The position numbers and the translations under genes were made by a program. From Trichosphaerium sp. ATCC 40318 (Eukaryota; Protista; Tubulinea), in NCBI GenBank assembly GCA_038496445.1, contig JALMLS010000550.1:1-64000 (forward strand): a DNA stretch of 64,000 bases, given 5' to 3'. Shown here piece by piece: positions 49,399 through 60,491 of the stretch; within the stretch, counting starts at the first letter, position 1; each line of letters begins with the position of its first letter. The notes under the pieces are model-generated. The model did not search any database, had not been told where the DNA came from, and saw nothing but the letters and a program-made list of their open reading frames with translations.

Positions 49399-51160
49399 TT
49401 AAAGAGCATTTTTACGTTTTGCTTTGATGACCTTGATACGTTCGAGTGGACTGAATTCAAGCTCTTTCAGCACTTCTGAGGTTATGTCACCAGGTTCAAT
49501 ACCTGCTTCATCCATCAATGATCCAAGTTCCTGTGCTCTTGCACTTGAAATACCCAACCTCATCAATGCCGACTTCCAATCAAATTTCTCAGTAGCAATT
49601 GATTGATTCTCTTGAGGTGGAAAGAAATCCGACTAAATAAACATGATTAACTTCAATCATAAAATCAGAAAAAAGAGATAGGCCTTTGTGTCAGCAACTG
49701 AGACGTGAGGTTTGTCATTCCATGATTCTCGAGATAAGAATACACTTTTATAGCTTGGTGAAGCAGGCTCAGGTTGTAATGTTAGAGATACATGTTCACC
49801 CTAAATCCTGTGAGCATAATTTTTTGGTTAATAGTGTAGTACTTACATGAATGTATTCTTCTTGATTTTGGTGTATTTTTAAGGCTTCAAAAGCATCTTG
49901 AATCATATCAAGATGTTCAGGAGCATCTCCAAACTTGGTGTAATCACGATCGGTATCAATCACAGCTTTTGATAAGTACTTGTCTTTGTCTTCTTTTATA
50001 TCGTCTTTATCTATGCTTGTTTTATTGACCTTGGTATTTCGTTGTTTAAGATGAGTTTGCTTAAATAATGTGTCAAATAAATAGATAAGGATATGAATAA
50101 GATGACAAAGTACCTTTTTGTGATTGCTGAATGTCAATTTTTGTGTTGAAGATTCTCCATAATCATTATCACCTCCTGTAACCAATCTGAAATCATGAGA
50201 TATTGCCAAGTAATGATGTGATTTATTGGCAAACTCAAGATATTTTCCAGGTAATTTTAATGGTTTGTTTGAATAGAACGAATCAATCCATTTCCCATCA
50301 CCCCAACCAAACAAACAACCTTCATCATCAATCGCAAATGATGACCAATAACCAGCATGGACAGATACGATGTTATTCAGTCCTTTGATGATACCTTGGC
50401 CGTACTTGTCATCAATACCCAACCCAAGACACCCACTGTAGTTGTATCCAAAAGAAAATACTTGTCCTGACTTGAGGAGAACAAGCACATGATAATCACC
50501 AATGGCAATATCAGTGGCATCTTCAATGTTTGGAACACATGAAATTGTCTTTGGATTCAAGAATAATGCTTTATCGTTTGCTTCATCTTTTGTTGTTCCC
50601 CAAAGAAAGACATGACCTGTTGATGTCATTGCTCCACTTACATACCGATTAGTTTGAATTTTTTGAATATTTTCAAGATGAGGAATGACTGTTGGCGATG
50701 TAACTTTCTCCTCGTCGAATGAATGACCCAATCCATGAAATCTGTTGTCTCCCCAAGAGTAGACATGGCCTGAATGTGATAACGCCATACTCACATGATA
50801 GGCAGTGACTTTTGTGATATTGTTGAGATTTGGAACACGTCTTGGCGACGAAATAGGTGACTTGAAGTGACTCAGACCCAATGAACCGTATACATTACAG
50901 CCCCATGAATACACAATACCGTTTGAATCAACTGCAAGGTTATGTTCATATCCAGCAGCAATACATACGATATTTATGACTGACGTTATTGGTCTTGCGA
51001 TAGAACTCTTTTTTTCGTCTGTATTACCCAATTGACGCTGATCGTTTTGTCCCCACGTGTAAACGAAGCCATCGTCTGCGATTACCATTGAATGTGAGAA
51101 ACCAGTGGCCAAACGGTTAACATATTGTAAATTAACCGACAAAGTTTGTGGTTCTGCCAT
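49399..51160 (-). CDS. RCC1 repeat protein with C-terminal SAM-like domain (copy 2)
   Basis: Close paralogue of 6408-8170 inside a direct segmental duplication (about 5.8-9.1 kb vs 48.8-52.1 kb). Confidence 0.85.
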
Positions 51161-52268: not shown

Positions 52269-53537
52269 TTACAATGGTTTCAATAGTTCCAATACACTAC
52301 CATCAGCTTGAGTTACATTAACCCATGAATAATCAGCAGGAGTAAAGTTAATATCCATTGTTGCTACTCTACTATCAGGTATGTTATCAAGCTCAGAAGA
52401 AGAGATCCTCAAGCTAAAAAGAAAGTAAACAAACAAACAACATTCAATGAACCAAAGTGATAAAAAAAAAAAAAAAGGAACGAAGACGTACTGGATGTCA
52501 GTGTTGACTGTCTTGCCTACACAACTACCAGTTCTCAAGTAGTAGTTCGACCATGTTTTGAACGCTCCTTGAGCATGACGACAACACTCATGTCCCTCTT
52601 CTGGACACTCAAGAGGCTTTGAATTCAATGGAGTAAGACTCAAACGAGCGTATAATGTTTCAACACATTTTGCGCTTGAGTACTTTGCTGGATCACATCG
52701 ATCAGCAATAAGGTCCTCAATACTTGGTTGAACCTGAGTCTTTACACGGAAAAAGTACTCAAACTCATGATTACACATGTACAAGTCCTTATTCAGAATA
52801 ACATTGTTAAAATAGTCCGTCATTCTAGGGTGAAAATATCAGCCAAAATAATTTCAAAGAAAATAAGAGCGAGACTCAGGATGTTTACAAAGGGGTAAAT
52901 ACGTACTCAGCAACTGAAAGAGGTACGGATCTGATTGACGAAAAGTCATTCGCGAAAGCTAGATTAGGATCCGTCAACTTGAAAGTCGTGTGTAAATCGG
53001 TGTTTACAGTCCTCAAAGGAACAGTAGTGGCGGTTTCAGCGAATTTAATACCGCGTTTACTAGTTTTACTCGTGTCGTCAGTGGTACTTAGAGTTATTGT
53101 AGGAGAAGCTGGCTTGACACCAATATCAGAGGCAACAGCTAATCGCAAATGGACTTTTACATCACCAGGTACAAGCCTTGGTACTACGCGGCGTAAGAAA
53201 ATCTTCATCAACGGTTTTTGTTTTAAAATCCAATCAAAGCGTCTCTTAGACACTAAGTGCAACAATTTCACAAAGTTTTGTGGTGTGTACCTGTAAAGGC
53301 TCTGAGTAGAGGGTCTTCACGGTAGATAGTAGCAATAGATGTAGCAATCTCTTTATCAGCCTATGTTGAAGCGGTTAGTTTTCGTTTCGGGCATGTATTG
53401 TGATTTTGGAGTACATTATAGCGACCTTCGGTTAATTCCAAGGATAGAGATTTTAACAAGTCAGCTGTTGTTGTAGCAGCGTATAAAACTGAAAAGAGAC
53501 AAGTCAAAACGACTACGAGTGCAAGAAATTTTTGCAT
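52269..53537 (-). CDS. Cluster gene E: secreted protein resembling the uncharacterised bacterial partner of DUF2589 clusters (5 exons)
   Basis: Spliced: MQKFLALVVVLTCLFSVLYA-ATTTADLLKSLSLELTEGRYN|ADKEIATSIATIYREDPLLRAFT|VPRLVPGDVKVHLRLAV...Cys-rich insert...LRISSSELDNIPDSRVATMDINFTPADYSWVNVTQADGSVLELLKPL*. All four introns are GT-AG and restore frame. Confidence 0.75.
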
Positions 53538-53692
53538 GCTACGCTATATTAGCTATAAATCGATTATTAAACAAGAGTACGTTGTTTTGAGGCGTGGCTA
53601 GCAACTTTGTAAAACTCTCGTGAACCCTTCGGGTTAGGTGGACTTAAATAGAAAAGGTGACTTACACTATTGTGAAACTATCGAAAAAAAAC

Positions 53693-55000
53693 ATGCAAAT
53701 GTGGAGACTACTTGCCTTGGCTTTACTTGCCACAGTTGTGTTTTCGCAAGACCCTGTTGAAAATGTATTGGGTAGCGTAGACTTCGCTTCTCTTCTCTCT
53801 GCGCCTTTGTCTGCTGCAATTGACGCACAGATTCAATCTAACCTTGCTACCGTTGATTTCATTCAATCGGTTGGCTTCAACGACGATGGGTCGGTCAAAA
53901 CGGCAAGTTAAAAAAAAATTCATGCGTTTTGTTTACAACATGCTAGGCTGAGTTTAAATACACACAAGTTAACGATGAAACCTTTGGAACAGAAGAGGTC
54001 TCGTTGCAGGTAAAATAAAATGCACTCGCTTTCTATTCGATCTTTAACCAACGTTTATAGTTACCTTTCTTGCTACTCCTACCACTCAACTACGTTAAAA
54101 TCTCAGAGGTTAATGTTGAATTTAATATGCAATTGAATCAAGTCACAGAAAGAGAAAGCAAGAGTAACATCGAAGGCAGTACGTTCGTTATTAAACTCCT
54201 TGTTTGTACCAACCCGAAAATCAAAAACTGAAGAAAATATTTTGCTACAACTTGTTGTTGTTGAAACTCGCTAATAACTCCCTTAGAACTCAACCTCGGT
54301 ACCAGTGCTCGTAGTTACAGTAGACGCACAGCCATGAAGGGTTCTGTCAGCACACAATTTCAATCGAGTGTCACAGATAGAACTGAGCGCGCTTATTCCT
54401 TTAAAGTTACTGTAAGATATCTTCAATCGTTTTTTTAGTGAAAAGCATGAAACTAACAACTATGTTTTTTGTAGATGAAAGCTACAGGCGCTGGTGATAC
54501 CCCTCCTGGTGTTAACAAACTATTGAGCCTCCTCGAAAACGCAATCTTCGCTGGTACGTAATAAAGGAAGGATTTTTTTTTTAAATTGGCGCTTTTTCAC
54601 CAAATGAACAAATGACTGAGCCAAGCTCGGAATGCGTTCTAGTATGCCTTGACATGCTCATATACGACTTTGAAGGCTTTTTAGCGTTTCAGCTGAAAGC
54701 ATTGTTTATTCATGCGTTTTTTTTGTAGAGACCGTATCTAACAATGACGCACCTACAACGGCACCAGAGACCGCCGGAAAGAGAGAACTGTTGTCAACTC
54801 AAGACCCAGCTGAAATAACACAAGAATATGAAACGCCTGAATACGGAGAAGAGGAAGAAACCGAAGATGTAGAAGACGTAGCTGAAGACATCGAAGAGGA
54901 AGAACAAGAACCTCAATACGAAAAGGAAATTGCTCAAGAACTCGAAAACGCTGAAATCGCTGCTGAATATGAAGCAGAGAACGAAGTTGTAGATGAGTAA
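53693..55000 (+). CDS. Cluster gene A: secreted DUF2589-family protein with acidic C-terminal tail (6 exons)
   Basis: Signal peptide, then DFASLLSAPLSAAIDAQIQSNLATVDFIQSVGF...KT|AEFKY...SLQ|LPFLLLLPLNYVKISEVNVEFNMQL...YSFKVT|MKA...PPGVNKLLSLLENAI. Tail GKR + Glu/Asp-rich segment. Confidence 0.85.
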
Positions 55001-55207
55001 ACGCATGAAATAAAAAAAAAAAATAGTTGGTCTATAGTGTAAATTAGTAAAAGGTCTATTTTTAATCAAGTCGGGAATCGGGTATCCGAAAATTTTCACG
55101 CATTTTTCCCTTCAAGTTCTTGAGGAATTGCCCTTTTGGGTAAGAGATTAAGGGATCCATATTGACTTAACAGACCGCGCACGATTGTTGAAATACCTCA
55201 AGCCACT

Positions 55208-56135
55208 ATGATGCGCCTTTTGCTGTTATTGGTTACAATTCTTGCTGTTGCTAATAGCACAGACACTGCTATTGATATACTAAACAACATCCCCTTTTCC
55301 GATATCGTCGGTGGTGCTTTCTCTGCTGTGATTGATGGACAAGTTCAAGCTTCCCTCGCCGCTTTAGAGTTCATGCAAGACATTGGTTTCGATACAGACC
55401 CAGTAACTGGCCAATCCACTGCCAAAACGGTACAAAACTTTCGGCTGCAACGAAAAAAAACGGTGTTTTACAGCTATTTGCTCACAAAATGCTTTTAGGT
55501 TGAATTCAAGTACCAAAAAAGCACACCAGAGGGCGTACAAGATATTGCCATTAACGTACGTTTCTTTTAGTGCGAAACCTCGACTTCCAGCTGTACAACC
55601 TCAAACAAACACGTAGGTACCTGTTATCTCACTCATTAGAGTACCTTCCCTCGCTGTAGAGGATGTCTCCATTGCTTTTAACGTTAAGTTGAACACAATC
55701 GAAAGAACAACCAGCTCTGGCAAGCGTGACCTCGGCGCTACGAAATTGTACGGCAACGCTACAAAAATTTAAACCAAAAAAAAACAGACCCAAAACGCTT
55801 CCATACTAATCTACTCGCTAGGCCATTCTCTAACAGAGCCCTACCTGCTCGTTACACTGGTACGCTGTTTTTCATGTTTCACGTGAAAATCCCTTTTTCG
55901 TCCTAGTGTCTTTGTTTCGCTTACAAATGCTTTAGTACCACGATTTACCGTCCAACCAACTACAAGACGTGAAGAAGGCGCCCAACAAACCCAACAAACC
56001 TACCAAGTCGAAATTAAGGTTAACGCCAAGCAACAAGCCACTTCTGGCGGTCTTACCCGTGTATTGGACGCTTTGCTCGCATCTGTCGTTCCTACTGACA
56101 CCATCGTTCCTGCTACGCCTACAGCCGCCCCTTAA
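55208..56135 (+). CDS. Cluster gene B: secreted DUF2589-family protein (5 exons)
   Basis: Signal peptide, then PFSDIVGGAFSAVIDGQVQASLAALEFMQDIGF...KT|VEFKY...AIN|VPVISLIRVPSLAVEDVSIAFNVKL...YQVEIKVNAKQQATSGGLTRVLDALL. Confidence 0.85.
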
Positions 56136-56338
56136 TTCGTGTTTGTGTAAAGCTACAAAGTTAAAATAAAAAAAAAATCACAAAAAACTCTTGTTCTGTT
56201 AATTGTTGACGGCCGTCAATACCAACCAATTGCACTACCTTCTTCAAAAAAAAACTTCGAGTAAAAAACTGGATGTAAAGCGCGTAGTCATTTGGGTAGA
56301 GATTGTATTTTTTTAATTGTTTTTTTTGTTACATGCAT

Positions 56339-57620
56339 TTACGAGTTGGAAACGAGATTATCACTGAGCTCCTCAAATCCTGCAAACTCCACCTTTACAA
56401 ACATAAATGTTAGCACACAAATTGACAAAAACGCTACAAGTGAACATACCGTGTAGTCCAAGTCAATGTTCCATCGTTTAGTTCCAACACGTTTGAGACC
56501 CATTGTCATAAGTCCGTCTCTCTCAAACGTACGTCCCTACAAATATCAATACAAAGCACAAATACATCTTTTAATTAACGTACTTGAACCTTTACATTAT
56601 ACGTAGGCTTCAGAAGAGGAAGATCTACAAAAGAAAACTGAAGTCAGTTTTCAGCTACTTGCAACTTGTGTTTCTTTTTGTCGCTCAAAAACGTACCAAT
56701 CAACTCCGATACACGAACACTGGTCGTCTCTCCATCAACAGTAAAGTTCAACTAGGCCTCAAAGTAAGAAAAACGTTCAAAGACGGCCTTGCAACAAAGT
56801 GAAATGATAGATAACGTACAGTTTGTTTGTTCTCGTATATCTCCAAAAGAGAATAAGCAGTAGTCACAACAGATCTTATATGAGACTCTAAGAACCCACC
56901 CATCATACTACCATAGAAAGATCCTACACGAAGTGCAGAGGCACGCATAATAGTAGGTGAGTCTTCATCGTCCAATTTTCTCTGATAACTGTACTTAGGT
57001 TCCAGCCACTCGGCTGTACCTCTAAGTTGTGGCCCTTTAGTGAATGTAGCGGTAGCTCTTGTGGTGCCATCAAGGTTGCTGAAGTCACTAACTGTAGTGG
57101 CTGTAGTCTTGGTTGGCTGGGTTGTATCTACGGGTTCGATGGTCTTTATTGGTTCAAATGTCGTAGTTGAGGTCTTCACAGGTTCAAGCGTCTTAACTGG
57201 CTCTAACGTCTTCAATGGTTCAACCGTCTTTACGGGTTCCAATGTCTTGATAGGCTCTGAGGTCTTCACAGGTTCAACCGTCTTAACTGGCTCCAACGTC
57301 TTCACAGGTTCAGCTGTCTTTACGGGTTCGAATGTCTTGATAACTGGTCTGGAGACCGTATTTGTTTTGAAAGTACTTTTTTTTGAATACAAAGTATCTT
57401 CTGCTGAATCTTTTGGGCTTGTTGTTTGAGGTTCTTCGCTTTCGCTTGTTTCTTCCGTTTCAGATTCTGTTGTAGGTTCGACTTGTTCTTTAGGTAGAGT
57501 TGGTTTGAAAGTAGCCCAATCGAATTCACGTGAGTCTGTTGCAACTACTTCAGCTTTTAATGCTGTCAATGGTTGTATTAAACCTACCGATAGTAAGTTA
57601 GTTGTCTTTAAGAATGACAT
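56339..57620 (-). CDS. Cluster gene D: long Thr/Pro/Glu/Lys repeat N-terminus + highly divergent DUF2589-like C-terminal domain (5 exons)
   Basis: Spliced C-terminus GSMMGGFLESHIRSVVTTAYSLLEIYENKQT|LNFTVDGETTSVRVSELI|DLPLLKPTYNVKVQ|GRTFE...WNIDLDYT|VEFAGFEELSDNLVSNS*. Four GT-AG introns keep frame. Confidence 0.65.
57130..57345 (-). repeat. Coding 18-bp tandem repeat, (x-E-P-V/I/L-K-T)n, about 10 units
   Basis: Visible in ORF 56748-57620. Confidence 0.85.
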
Positions 57621-58231
57621 TGTAATTTGTTACCTTGTTCTGCGCGTTTTTTCATTAGCTCTATTAAATACGTCATGTCACCTGCGAAAAAGAACGCTGG
57701 GGTGACGTATAGATGTGTAGCAGGTTTGGTGTCATCTGGTGAACATTCCAAGCGGGAAATTACTATTTCGTTATTTCTAATACCACACGACGCTATTATT
57801 TGTAAGTGTGACTACGTGGAATGTATTAAGAGTACCAGCTAAACTTTTCGATATTTTATTTTCGGAGAGACATCCCTCAACCGTTAAATCTAAAGTCTTG
57901 GCATTGCACAGAGAAATAATTTGAAGAATGCAAACCTTTAGCGAATTAGGGTTTACAAAAGTTCATGAGAAACTTTTTTAACAGTATGTACGGCGTAGAC
58001 GTTGTAATTAAAGCGTGCACAACATATAAAATCGAGTGTGTAAACAAAAATATTTTTTTTTGCGAAATCTTCACCAAAACTCTACGTACAAAAACCGCTA
58101 TACGCGACAATTGCCGTGCAGCAACTTCCTTCATTTTTTCACTAATTCATCTCAGTTTGGCAGAACCTCGTGAACGATTTCGGGGGGAATTTGCCCTTCT
58201 AACTCACATTCTCACACAGTTTATAAGTAAC

Positions 58232-59154
58232 ATGCAACGTTTCTTGCTCATCTGCTTGACCTTATTCGTAGTCGGTTCCTTCGCCAATGGCGGTAGAGAA
58301 CTCGCCTCCCTAAACTTCCAAAATCTTATCGGTGGACCACTCACAGCCGTTATTGAGGCTCAGGTACACACTTTCCCACTGCGAGTAAACAACTAAGTTT
58401 TTTTTTCTAGGTCGCTTCTGCTCAAGCAACCGTAGACTTCATCCAATCCGTTGGTTTTGAAGAATCTGGTGAAGCTCGCATGGTACGTTAATAGATCTTC
58501 TTTTTTGCTTTTTTTTTGCTTCGTTTTCGTTCTTTTCAAGTTTTATCACCACAACGCACTCCTGGCGTTATTTTTTTGCTGTCCAACAGGCTACAGCGCT
58601 ATTCTAAATGTTCATGAGAATCAAGCAAAACTTTTTCCTATTTCGGAACCTTCCTTCTTACCCTTACCTTTAGGCTCTCTTTACATTCCAAGAGTACAAT
58701 GAAGGTGCTGATAACTCCTCAGCCGAACTCAGAAACGTCAGCATGGAGGTATGCAATAAAACAAAAAAAAAAAAGCCGCCAACAATTTTTTCATTAACTT
58801 AATTTGTAGATCCCATTTTTGATGCTTTTCCCACTCCCATACATGCGCATTACCTCTTTCGAACTTGACTTCAACGCCAAGATCAACTCTGTTTCCCAAA
58901 GAGTCAGAAGCCGTGAATTCGGTCTCGGTGTCTCCGCTGCTGTCAAAGCCGGTTGGGGTCCAGTTAAACTAAATGTCAAGACATCCATGTCTTACAAATC
59001 CGCAAGCTCTTCCACCAACAAGAAGGAATCAAGCTACTCCATGGCCATCAAGGTCCGTGCTGAGAACATGGTTGAATTGCCAGAAGGTGCTAGAGAATTG
59101 CTCGATGCTCTCAAGCAAGCTATCCTTAAGGACAGCGCCCCAGCTGGACCATAA
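58232..59154 (+). CDS. Cluster gene C: secreted DUF2589-family protein (4 exons)
   Basis: Signal peptide, then ELASLNFQNLIGGPLTAVIEAQ|VASAQATVDFIQSVGF..RM|ALFTF...SME|IPFLMLFPLPYMRITSFELDFNAKI...GWGPVKLNVKTSMS...YSMAIKVRA...LPEGARELLDALKQAI. Confidence 0.9.
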
Positions 59155-59580
59155 GTTGTTTCCCTTCTAAAGCAAATATTTGCTCTATTACGCAATAAAG
59201 ACCCTTTTTTTGTGTCTACACAGTTTCTAGTTAATATCTTGTATTTTTTTTGATTCGTTTTATAGCGTTTTTTTACGCTTGTTGTAATTGTGCCCTTTTG
59301 TTGTTGATTTAATTGTGCGTGACTGAATTTCGGAGTGTCTATGTCTGTATTTTGCTGTGATGCGATACCTTCGTTTCAATAAACAACCCACGTGTAGGTA
59401 GCGGAGATATTACAACATCACACCTACAAAACGGATATTGTGAACGGCATACGGAAAAACCTGGTTTAACCGGTTCCTAATAAGGTAGCAATAAACGTAC
59501 CAGTATCTAAAAAAGTTTAAGCTGAGTTTTTGAAAATTCTTTAAGTCGTTTGCCGTCCATCTGGTATTGCACTTACAGCT

Positions 59581-60491
59581 ATGTCTGACCATCGCGGGTT
59601 GTCTTTATCTCCCTACGATGATCAAAAGGATAAAAGGAAAAAATACGAACGAAAACGAAGAGAGAATCTTGCCAACGCTTTTGAAGAGCTCAGAGAGGTT
59701 CTAGAATCGAAGTACCTTCGAAAAAATCTTCTTTCACGAAACGCGGTACTGCAAGAAGCTGCAGCGTGTCTTAGAAGCTTGTGTGAGAAGAAGGAAAAGA
59801 CCCAAGGAACCGCAGCGTGGCTAGCAAACAAAGTAACGGAAATACCAGGCTTACCTGAAGTCGTACGCACCAAAACGAGCTAAATCGCTACGAAATTATC
59901 TGATAGCGCGTTTGGCGATAGGTGGCATTTGTAGAGGAGTTAAAAATTCAATGTGCTGTGACTAGAAATACAGAAGACCCAGAAACACGAAAACGTAGAC
60001 GTACAGACTGTAACATTATGCATCAGCAAGTATTGGTACGTATTTATTTTTATTTCTTTGTGGATTTGTCATTTTTGTTTTTTTTTTGGGTTAAAATGAA
60101 CCTAAAAAACGATAAAGAAATTGATTGTTTCCGTAAAGAAAGAAAGAAAAAAAATTCAATTGAAAACAAAAAAAAAAAAAAATCTCGAAGTGAAAGAATA
60201 TTTTTTTTCTCGGTTTACAGCGCTAGTTGTAGTTTGGAATTAGTCTAATTACGTTTATATAATATATATACAGGTTTTATACACGCTAAAAATCACATTG
60301 CACACGTTTAAAAAGCACCATTCACTCGTGTCTTTTCACTTTTTTTTTTAAACTTGTATAGTTTTTGGTTTAACCTTTTTTAGCCGGTTCCCTTGTACAC
60401 CTCTTCACCATCTAACCCTAATAACTTGTCTTCGAGACTGCCTCACCTGCATAAAACTCAAACCGATAATAATACACACGTGCGTGTATAA
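59581..60491 (+). CDS. bHLH transcription factor (Myc/Max-like group), 3 or more exons
   Basis: KRKKYERKRRENLANAFEELREVL...LSRNAVLQEAAACLRSL is a basic helix-loop-helix. Downstream exons at 59922-60035 and 60384-60491. Confidence 0.75.

Follow-up and report, generated by a model that had tools for sequence, protein, structure and literature searches.

A cluster of five intron-containing genes for predicted secreted proteins in the amoeba Trichosphaerium, a candidate descendant of a mobile prokaryotic DUF2589 cassette

The window analyzed here is a stretch of 64,000 nucleotides from Trichosphaerium sp. ATCC 40318 (contig JALMLS010000550.1, positions 1 to 64,000), in which five genes, arranged as E(-) A(+) B(+) D(-) C(+), occupy positions 52269-59154 (Table 1). 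Three of them encode proteins of the DUF2589 family (Pfam PF11655), and on balance we lean towards reading the cluster as the eukaryotic descendant of a prokaryotic gene cassette. Gene models were built from three-frame translations, canonical GTAC-type donors and RNA contigs, and they bear out the claim of an earlier note, made from the sequence alone, that the five genes are adjacent with nothing unrelated between them, as the inter-coding spacers measure 98-208 bases. The start codons of D and C are 98 bases apart. The window is eukaryotic, given its GC content of 34-43% throughout and its short GT-AG introns, which fits the Trichosphaerium draft genome, whose GC content is 37.7% and whose introns average 75 bp (PMC10521059), and the GC content of the cluster matches that found elsewhere in the window. 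Intron 1 of gene A (53903-53946), a predicted intron, keeps the reading frame only with a GC-AG donor (GCAAGT), and its position is that of a GT-AG intron in B and C. Signal-peptide-like N-termini, assessed by eye through their n-, h- and c-regions, are present on all five products, as had been claimed for A, B, C and E, with D joining them through its extended 5′ end.

Table 1. Genes and features of the cluster; positions are those of the window.
Feature	Position	Strand	Description
Gene E	53537-52269	-	5 exons, 338 aa; canonical GTAC..AG introns; signal peptide, partner-like N-domain, Cys-rich middle, partner-like C-terminal end
E residues 25-69	53239..53465	-	Helix and PLL motif matching the partner N-domain (profile and hhalign)
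Last E exon	52272..52412	-	C-terminal W..QADGS..L.P motif; second phmmer domain against locus L061
Gene A	53693-55000	+	6 exons, 288 aa; signal peptide and DUF2589 domain, followed by a Glu-rich acidic tail
Gene B	55208-56135	+	5 exons, 215 aa; signal peptide, most divergent DUF2589 domain; prolines in hairpin
Gene D	58134-56339	-	8 exons, 434 aa; start resembling a signal peptide, then EPVKT repeats and a C-terminal domain
EPVKT-type repeat array in D	57125..57335	-	From translation; weak Pfam Cementoin match, E 0.03
D residues 320-386	56583..56930	-	Weak likeness to the partner N-domain (helix and VRVSEL-IDLPLL strand; hhalign, phmmer)
Gene C	58232-59154	+	4 exons, 207 aa; signal peptide, DUF2589 domain nearest to the bacterial consensus
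Long hairpin of C	58870..59061	+	Amphipathic, Ser/Thr-rich, GWGP tip; alternating residue pattern
Spliced RNA antisense to C	58340-59200	-	Introns 58604-58667 and 58728-58853; CT..AC joints and contig pieces, run X2

The proposal that A, B and C are full DUF2589 proteins holds. Pfam PF11655 matches C exon 4 alone (E 7.4e-8, 33.3 bits; gathering cut-off 23 bits), while A exon 1 (20.1 bits) and B exon 1 (14.6 bits) fall under the cut-off. An exhaustive search seeded with the last exon of C gave 260 representative clusters, and a family profile made from 66 full-length PF11655 homologues served as a proxy for Pfam on the spliced proteins. Against this profile C scores 209.7, A 158.9 and B 127.9 bits, each collinear with profile positions 5-201 and hence showing the full DUF2589 architecture. 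In a six-frame profile scan of the 64 kb, single exon pieces of A also match, and no further DUF2589 piece is found beyond A, B and C; D and E do not match the family profile (-1.8 and -0.6 bits). A, B and C share with prokaryotic PF11655 proteins the N-terminal helix with its IGGPL.A...AQ motif, the first hairpin, the Pro-rich VP.L..PIPY segment, the long hairpin and the C-terminal P.G...L helix. In contrast to the prokaryotic members, which lack a signal peptide and are found singly at each locus, they carry signal peptides and 3-5 introns and stand as three tandem paralogues; the acidic tail of A and the degenerated hairpin of B are further departures. Homologue searches and scans confirm that DUF2589 is mainly bacterial and without a signal peptide, as stated in the earlier note. 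No full-length transcript-derived A, B or C protein was found in the database search seeded with window exons.

Amoebae commonly receive genes by horizontal transfer. A bacterial origin of the amoeba DUF2589 genes is supported by sequence comparison, since the family is overwhelmingly prokaryotic, with hundreds of prokaryotic clusters versus a handful of eukaryotic sequences, and since C is 46-47% identical to a bacterial subfamily (47% to homologue P0003). Among the transfer candidates in Table S3 of the Trichosphaerium genome paper is TRSP24482.t1, described as a "DUF2589 domain-containing protein", for which an alien index of 51.7, 3 introns and, as the best donor, Aquabacterium lacunae are given (PMC10521059). 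This entry fits gene C, so the transfer candidate is already catalogued. When A, B and C are aligned with P0003, P0048 and P0040, two phase-0 introns common to all three lie at identical alignment columns, 76 and 104, and a tree in which the three are constrained to group gains 22 log-likelihood units over a quick free search (p-AU 0.73). The shared introns and the better constrained tree argue that A, B and C are duplicates made inside the amoeba after intron gain, and not three co-transferred genes.

Two public RNA runs (X1 and X2) cover the region, and their contigs were compared with the window over 53300-59200; both runs are small, with 13 and 18 million letters of contigs. For the Trichosphaerium transcriptomes, the genome paper names BioProject PRJNA833396 (PMC10521059). 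All four B junctions are found in one RNA contig of run X2, and seven D junctions in contigs of runs X1 and X2, so that the proposed gain of spliceosomal introns stands for B and D. The RNA joints lengthen D by three exons upstream of the ORF first noted and move its start from 57620 to 58134; the new N-terminus, MKEVAARQLSR followed by a hydrophobic stretch, is signal-peptide-like. These confirmed introns reject the idea that the cluster is bacterial contamination or a misassembly, or that an old eukaryotic family was passed to bacteria, which we regard as scarcely credible. The bacterial affinities of the proteins, and nothing more, speak for it; against it, the cluster has the GC content of the window and is flanked by an RCC1 gene and others, and prokaryotic DUF2589 clusters far outnumber the eukaryotic sequences.

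The RNA check gives a different result for C, none of whose three modeled junctions is seen in the contigs. Contigs over C instead carry CT..AC joints at 58603/58668 and 58727/58854 and run unspliced through its first intron. The antisense RNA to which these joints belong abuts the 5′ end of D at 58338, and upstream of the ATG of D all three frames are closed; this minus-strand RNA through C may represent an extended 5′ leader of D, or else an independent antisense transcript that regulates C. Read depth over A and over exon 1 of E is zero in both runs, the remainder of E lying outside the compared stretch. It has therefore to be considered that the cluster is decaying or largely silent, with B and D expressed, A, C and E relics, and C silenced by antisense RNA, a reading to which the "-" in the column adjacent to the DUF2589 entry in Table S3, probably meaning "not detected in the transcriptome" (PMC10521059), can be added. 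We consider it very unlikely. All reading frames are open, the motifs are conserved, the splice sites are canonical, and C is the copy nearest the family consensus; because the runs are small, the missing sense RNA for A, C and E carries little weight.

The prokaryotic relatives of A, B and C sit in a conserved three-gene arrangement. With one genome scanned per species, 250 loci were confirmed; the best 80 of these were retained, and 82 loci were analyzed. DUF2589 occurs once per locus in all 82, so the expectation that it forms clusters of paralogues is not borne out; its neighboring partner is a distant relative. A run of DUF2589-related genes has been described in Archaeoglobus, AF0414-AF0417 (PMC3949148). 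The partner gene (~225-330 aa) lies directly after DUF2589 on the same strand in 77/82 loci, and a helical third gene (~190 aa) comes next in 74/82, and no other neighbor of DUF2589 is conserved across the 82 loci. The same trio occurs in two other subfamilies (L004 and L085). Among the best 80 of the 250 loci, DUF2589 proteins are 80-98% identical in Burkholderiales, Ignavibacteriota, KSB1, Prolixibacteraceae, Clostridia and Chloroflexota, and this identity extends to the archaea Methanoperedens and Methanosarcina, which argues that the DUF2589 gene is very mobile. Identity of 80-98% at the protein level across distant phyla and methanogenic/methanotrophic archaea is likewise observed for the cassette (loci L005-L084, e.g. 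L007 6001-7947). The L007 cassette is flanked by ISL3 and IS4-type transposases, and the surrounding genes vary between loci. At the level of sequence, the trio is shown to move between phyla as a unit.

The partner N-domain is itself distantly DUF2589-like (hhalign P 5.5e-4), and DUF2589 and partner appear to have in common a unit composed of a helix plus a PLL..VPR.R..E..ID.P strand. A structural model of the partner (pLDDT 84) has a helix and a strand, together with a four-helix bundle and a small sheet, and a fold search with it matched only generic four-helix bundles; Pfam gives nothing above cut-off for the partner and third genes. Some bacterial DUF2589 proteins (P0124, P0127, P0107) are fused to RCC1 repeats or Big_1 Ig-like domains, which suggests an exposed location, and other members carry GGTGY..P.V.I-type inserts. 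In a variant of the cassette at L085 (561-5250), two partner-third pairs come after a single DUF2589 gene, with a (TE)n repeat in the middle of one partner and an adjoining endolysin-like Amidase_2 gene; the L004 partner has a QPV repeat, which recalls the EPVKT array of D. No name or paper was found for the DUF2589/partner/third-gene cassette, and the literature found on DUF2589 consists of passing mentions (e.g. PMC3949148).

Gene E very probably encodes a collinear, strongly diverged homologue of the partner protein. Right after its signal peptide E reads ADLLKSLSLELTEGRYNADKEIATSIATIYREDPLL, which aligns with the partner consensus ...LLGsL..L..ARR.ADEETAA.AEYYK..PLL, and the exon holding residues 25-69 is the top six-frame match to the partner profile in the window. 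Against a narrow partner profile E scores 18.8 bits (best of 2000 shuffles, 12.8), and against a profile of 195 diverse partner N-domains 20.1 bits (best of 2000 shuffles, 7.8); in hhalign the match to the partner N-domain has P 8e-5. In the reverse search, with E against 4230 ORFs of the prokaryotic loci, all 25 best matches are partner genes. At the other end, E terminates in W.NVTQADGSVLELLKPL, collinear with the end of the L061 partner, partners ending in ..EEG.EW.......G.....L.PE. The C-terminal part of E alone scores 0.5 bits, a value that 69 of 2000 shuffles reach. No E-like eukaryotic protein is among the matches listed (120 of 248) of a word-index search seeded with partners and E exons, which are bacterial partners only; E exon 4 gives nothing in the ESM Atlas, and Pfam finds nothing above cut-off on the exons of E and D.

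An alternative is that a single DUF2589 gene was acquired and then duplicated, with E and D being unrelated amoeba genes whose likeness to the partner arose by chance. The match of E is short (~45 residues, 20 bits, 31-40% identity), D is not significant with profiles, and no relatives were found for the middle of E or for D in the Pfam, word-index and ESM Atlas searches. Chance is nevertheless a quite unlikely explanation, as none of the 2000 shuffles reaches the score of E, this score rises with the broader profile, the reverse search yields partner genes exclusively, the N- and C-terminal matches fall at corresponding ends of E and the partner, and E stands directly beside DUF2589 genes.

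The relationship of D is less clear. Its C-terminal domain resembles the partner N-domain weakly (hhalign P 0.0024), the partner-like domain thus being C-terminal and not N-terminal in this protein, and against two partner profiles D scores a non-significant 2.2 and -0.8 bits. The ESM Atlas returned nothing for the C-terminal part. D was also considered as a DUF2589 paralogue and rejected, based on its score against the family profile, on z-values over shuffles of 0.7-1.3 for its C-terminus versus A, B and C, and on its introns, of which at most one could coincide with the shared ones, the next differing in phase. Compared with the window, the public runs show a 36-base in-frame skip at 57264-57301, inside the EPVKT array, and a 3-base deletion at 57428; the difference in array length is a repeat-number polymorphism between strains.

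What the amoeba and prokaryotic arrangements have in common is that DUF2589 and a partner homologue (E) are adjacent, and the L085 variant has two partners, as the amoeba may (E and perhaps D). The amoeba differs in that no third-gene homologue is found in the window, the genes are on both strands and have introns and signal peptides, DUF2589 is present in three copies, and a Cys-rich region stands where the partner has its middle part. The earlier idea that the set was acquired as a unit therefore survives in part. E is a probable homologue of the bacterial partner, so at least two cassette genes would still be linked; A, B and C are local duplicates to judge by their shared introns and the tree, and D resembles the partner N-domain weakly and DUF2589 not at all. 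Bacterial operons and gene pairs that have been kept linked in eukaryotes offer a comparison: there too, two functionally linked prokaryotic genes stay neighbors, while in the amoeba the products are predicted to be secreted and one member has been expanded.

The long hairpin of DUF2589 is Ser/Thr-rich, and hydrophobic and polar residues alternate in it around a GWG tip; the alternation is seen in C, A, P0003, P0046 and P0182. AlphaFold models the bacterial homologue P0003 (pLDDT 74.5) as a 30-residue helix followed by a first hairpin, a second hairpin and a C-terminal helix; the strands of the second hairpin (98-129 and 140-170) are ~30 residues each, and its tip is of low confidence. The best PDB rows of a Foldseek search with this model are the pore-state stems of anthrax PA, iota Ib, CDTb and lysenin, and rows for phage tail and flagellar ring proteins are also present; these matches are confined to the hairpin and weak (E 0.01-0.1, TM < 0.2). 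In the AlphaFold DB clusters only other DUF2589 entries are found. Against PDB sequences the family profile has a single match (E 0.14), in which the DUF2589 hairpin aligns with the hairpin region of Mpp75Aa1.1 (PDB 7ML9), a putative beta-pore former (PMC8504720). With aerolysin and ETX-MTX2 toxins such as Mpp75Aa1.1, DUF2589 shares a Ser/Thr-rich, amphipathic, alternating hairpin with a Gly/aromatic tip. Unlike them, it has a helical N-terminus and no shared elongated beta-sheet core (TM < 0.2, Z < 5), and the donor proteins are without signal peptides. The horizontally acquired eukaryotic relatives of aerolysin-type toxins resemble A, B and C in being secreted and of bacterial origin. The likeness may indicate how DUF2589 works, not membership of that family, and the hairpin suggests, in modeled form, a ring- or pore-forming assembly; the extrusome, fiber or sheath ideas of the earlier note find no support.

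Taken as a whole, the events that would lead from the prokaryotic DUF2589 cassette to the amoeba cluster, a descent we hold to be somewhat favored by the sequences, are as follows. One transfer would have brought DUF2589 and the partner together, and the third gene would have been lost or be located elsewhere. A, B and C were duplicated in place after intron gain, with E sitting beside them as a very probable, diverged partner homologue, while D would be a further partner-derived or an unrelated secreted repeat protein. Signal-peptide-like N-termini have taken the place of the bacterial start, and the rerouting to the secretory pathway that had been proposed agrees with this replacement, as judged by eye. 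The shared helix-plus-strand unit would let DUF2589 and partner co-assemble, the oligomerized subunits would form a beta-barrel ring or membrane pore from hairpins of ~30 residues per strand, and the amoeba assembly would be directed at prey or competitors, either extracellularly or within the phagosome lumen. This mechanism of co-assembly, ring or pore formation and extracellular or phagosomal action, which draws on the structural models, is a tentative proposal, possible rather than probable. The larger claim, that DUF2589, partner and third protein make up a mobile, hetero-oligomeric beta-barrel ring or pore machine, two subunits of which were captured together, each given a signal peptide, and expanded to a five-gene secreted weapon or surface assembly, is doubtful.

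Besides the shortness of the E match, the low score of its C-terminal part alone, the lack of read depth over A and exon 1 of E, the unseen junctions of C and the weakness of the Foldseek rows, several observations weigh against this course of events. The third-gene profile has no match in the gene models or in six frames of the 64-kb window, and in a phmmer search against the 4230 ORFs the 11 best matches of D are all partners, with a marginal best E of 0.04. The DUF2589, partner and third proteins have no matches in PADLOC, PHROGs and NCBIfam, and no signal peptide is found on the bacterial DUF2589 proteins. The hairpin of B contains prolines and the tip in A is charged. A wide fold search of the DUF2589 model with VIA-align gives nothing with Z >= 5, and the sequence match to Mpp75Aa1.1 may reflect composition only.

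Several of these features can also be accommodated by a structural role. The coat of Trichosphaerium is fibrous and spicule-bearing, and the five proteins could be parts of the extracellular cover or matrix, in which the hairpins make fibers or sheets, the EPVKT repeats form a cross-linked spacer and no membrane is attacked. Signal peptides on all five proteins would suit such a role, as would the proline/lysine repeat array of D with its weak match to Cementoin, a transglutaminase substrate, and the long acidic tail of A, which could bind cations; long hairpins occur in the ring and tube proteins of the fold-search rows as well. We nonetheless find this unlikely, given that no known matrix domain was found, that the mobile donor trio of prokaryotes shows no association with envelope genes, and that an amphipathic Ser/Thr-rich hairpin is typical of insertion hairpins.

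Beyond Trichosphaerium, a supported clade (SH-aLRT 95) unites 13 representative DUF2589 sequences that have signal peptides at the N-terminus and conserved N-x-S/T sequons. They come from JGI sample contigs of ~1 kb, the poly(A) transcripts of the clade belonging to samples 3300030550 and 3300039276; among the contigs, L003 has AT-rich untranslated ends and L088 a poly(A) tract, and judged by their sequence these contigs are eukaryotic mRNAs. A single origin for all eukaryotic copies is neither favored nor rejected (p-AU 0.50), and in a metagenome scan with the signal-peptide clade nearly all matches are bacterial relatives. In contig L088 (1-1566), two DUF2589 mRNAs of this clade that differ slightly are joined into a palindromic chimera; the organism has at least two close paralogues or alleles, and the end of the contig resembles large-subunit rRNA by eye. 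In L002 (3-1077 of a 1150-base contig), a GFA-family ORF ends 20 bases before a signal-peptide DUF2589 ORF, an arrangement that looks bicistronic or chimeric. In the Trichosphaerium window, the RCC1 gene beside the cluster lies at 49796-51160, with other genes flanking too; a tie between this neighbor and the bacterial DUF2589-RCC1 fusions was rejected, as the similarity of 27-32% is that of generic repeats. To the right of the cluster, an ORF at 59581-59883 (+), known from the ORF list only, resembles a basic helix-loop-helix region (KRKKYERKRRENLANAFEELREVLE).

The occurrence of a transfer is not in itself new, as one DUF2589 gene already stands in a supplementary candidate list (PMC10521059). 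What appears to be new is that the source is a conserved, very mobile three-gene cassette without annotation, and that at least two of its components have been kept side by side after gaining introns and signal peptides. That the components are still neighbors argues that the proteins must work together, while the signal peptides, and the bacterial proteins fused to Ig-like domains, speak for a site of action outside the cytoplasm. Descent from the cassette supplies a concrete hypothesis about a domain that occurs in hundreds of prokaryotic lineages and has no known function, and the amoeba provides a eukaryotic system in which secretion eases protein collection and testing. If the ring or pore machine were real, the cluster would represent a rare domestication by a eukaryote of a whole bacterial protein complex, and not of a single enzyme.

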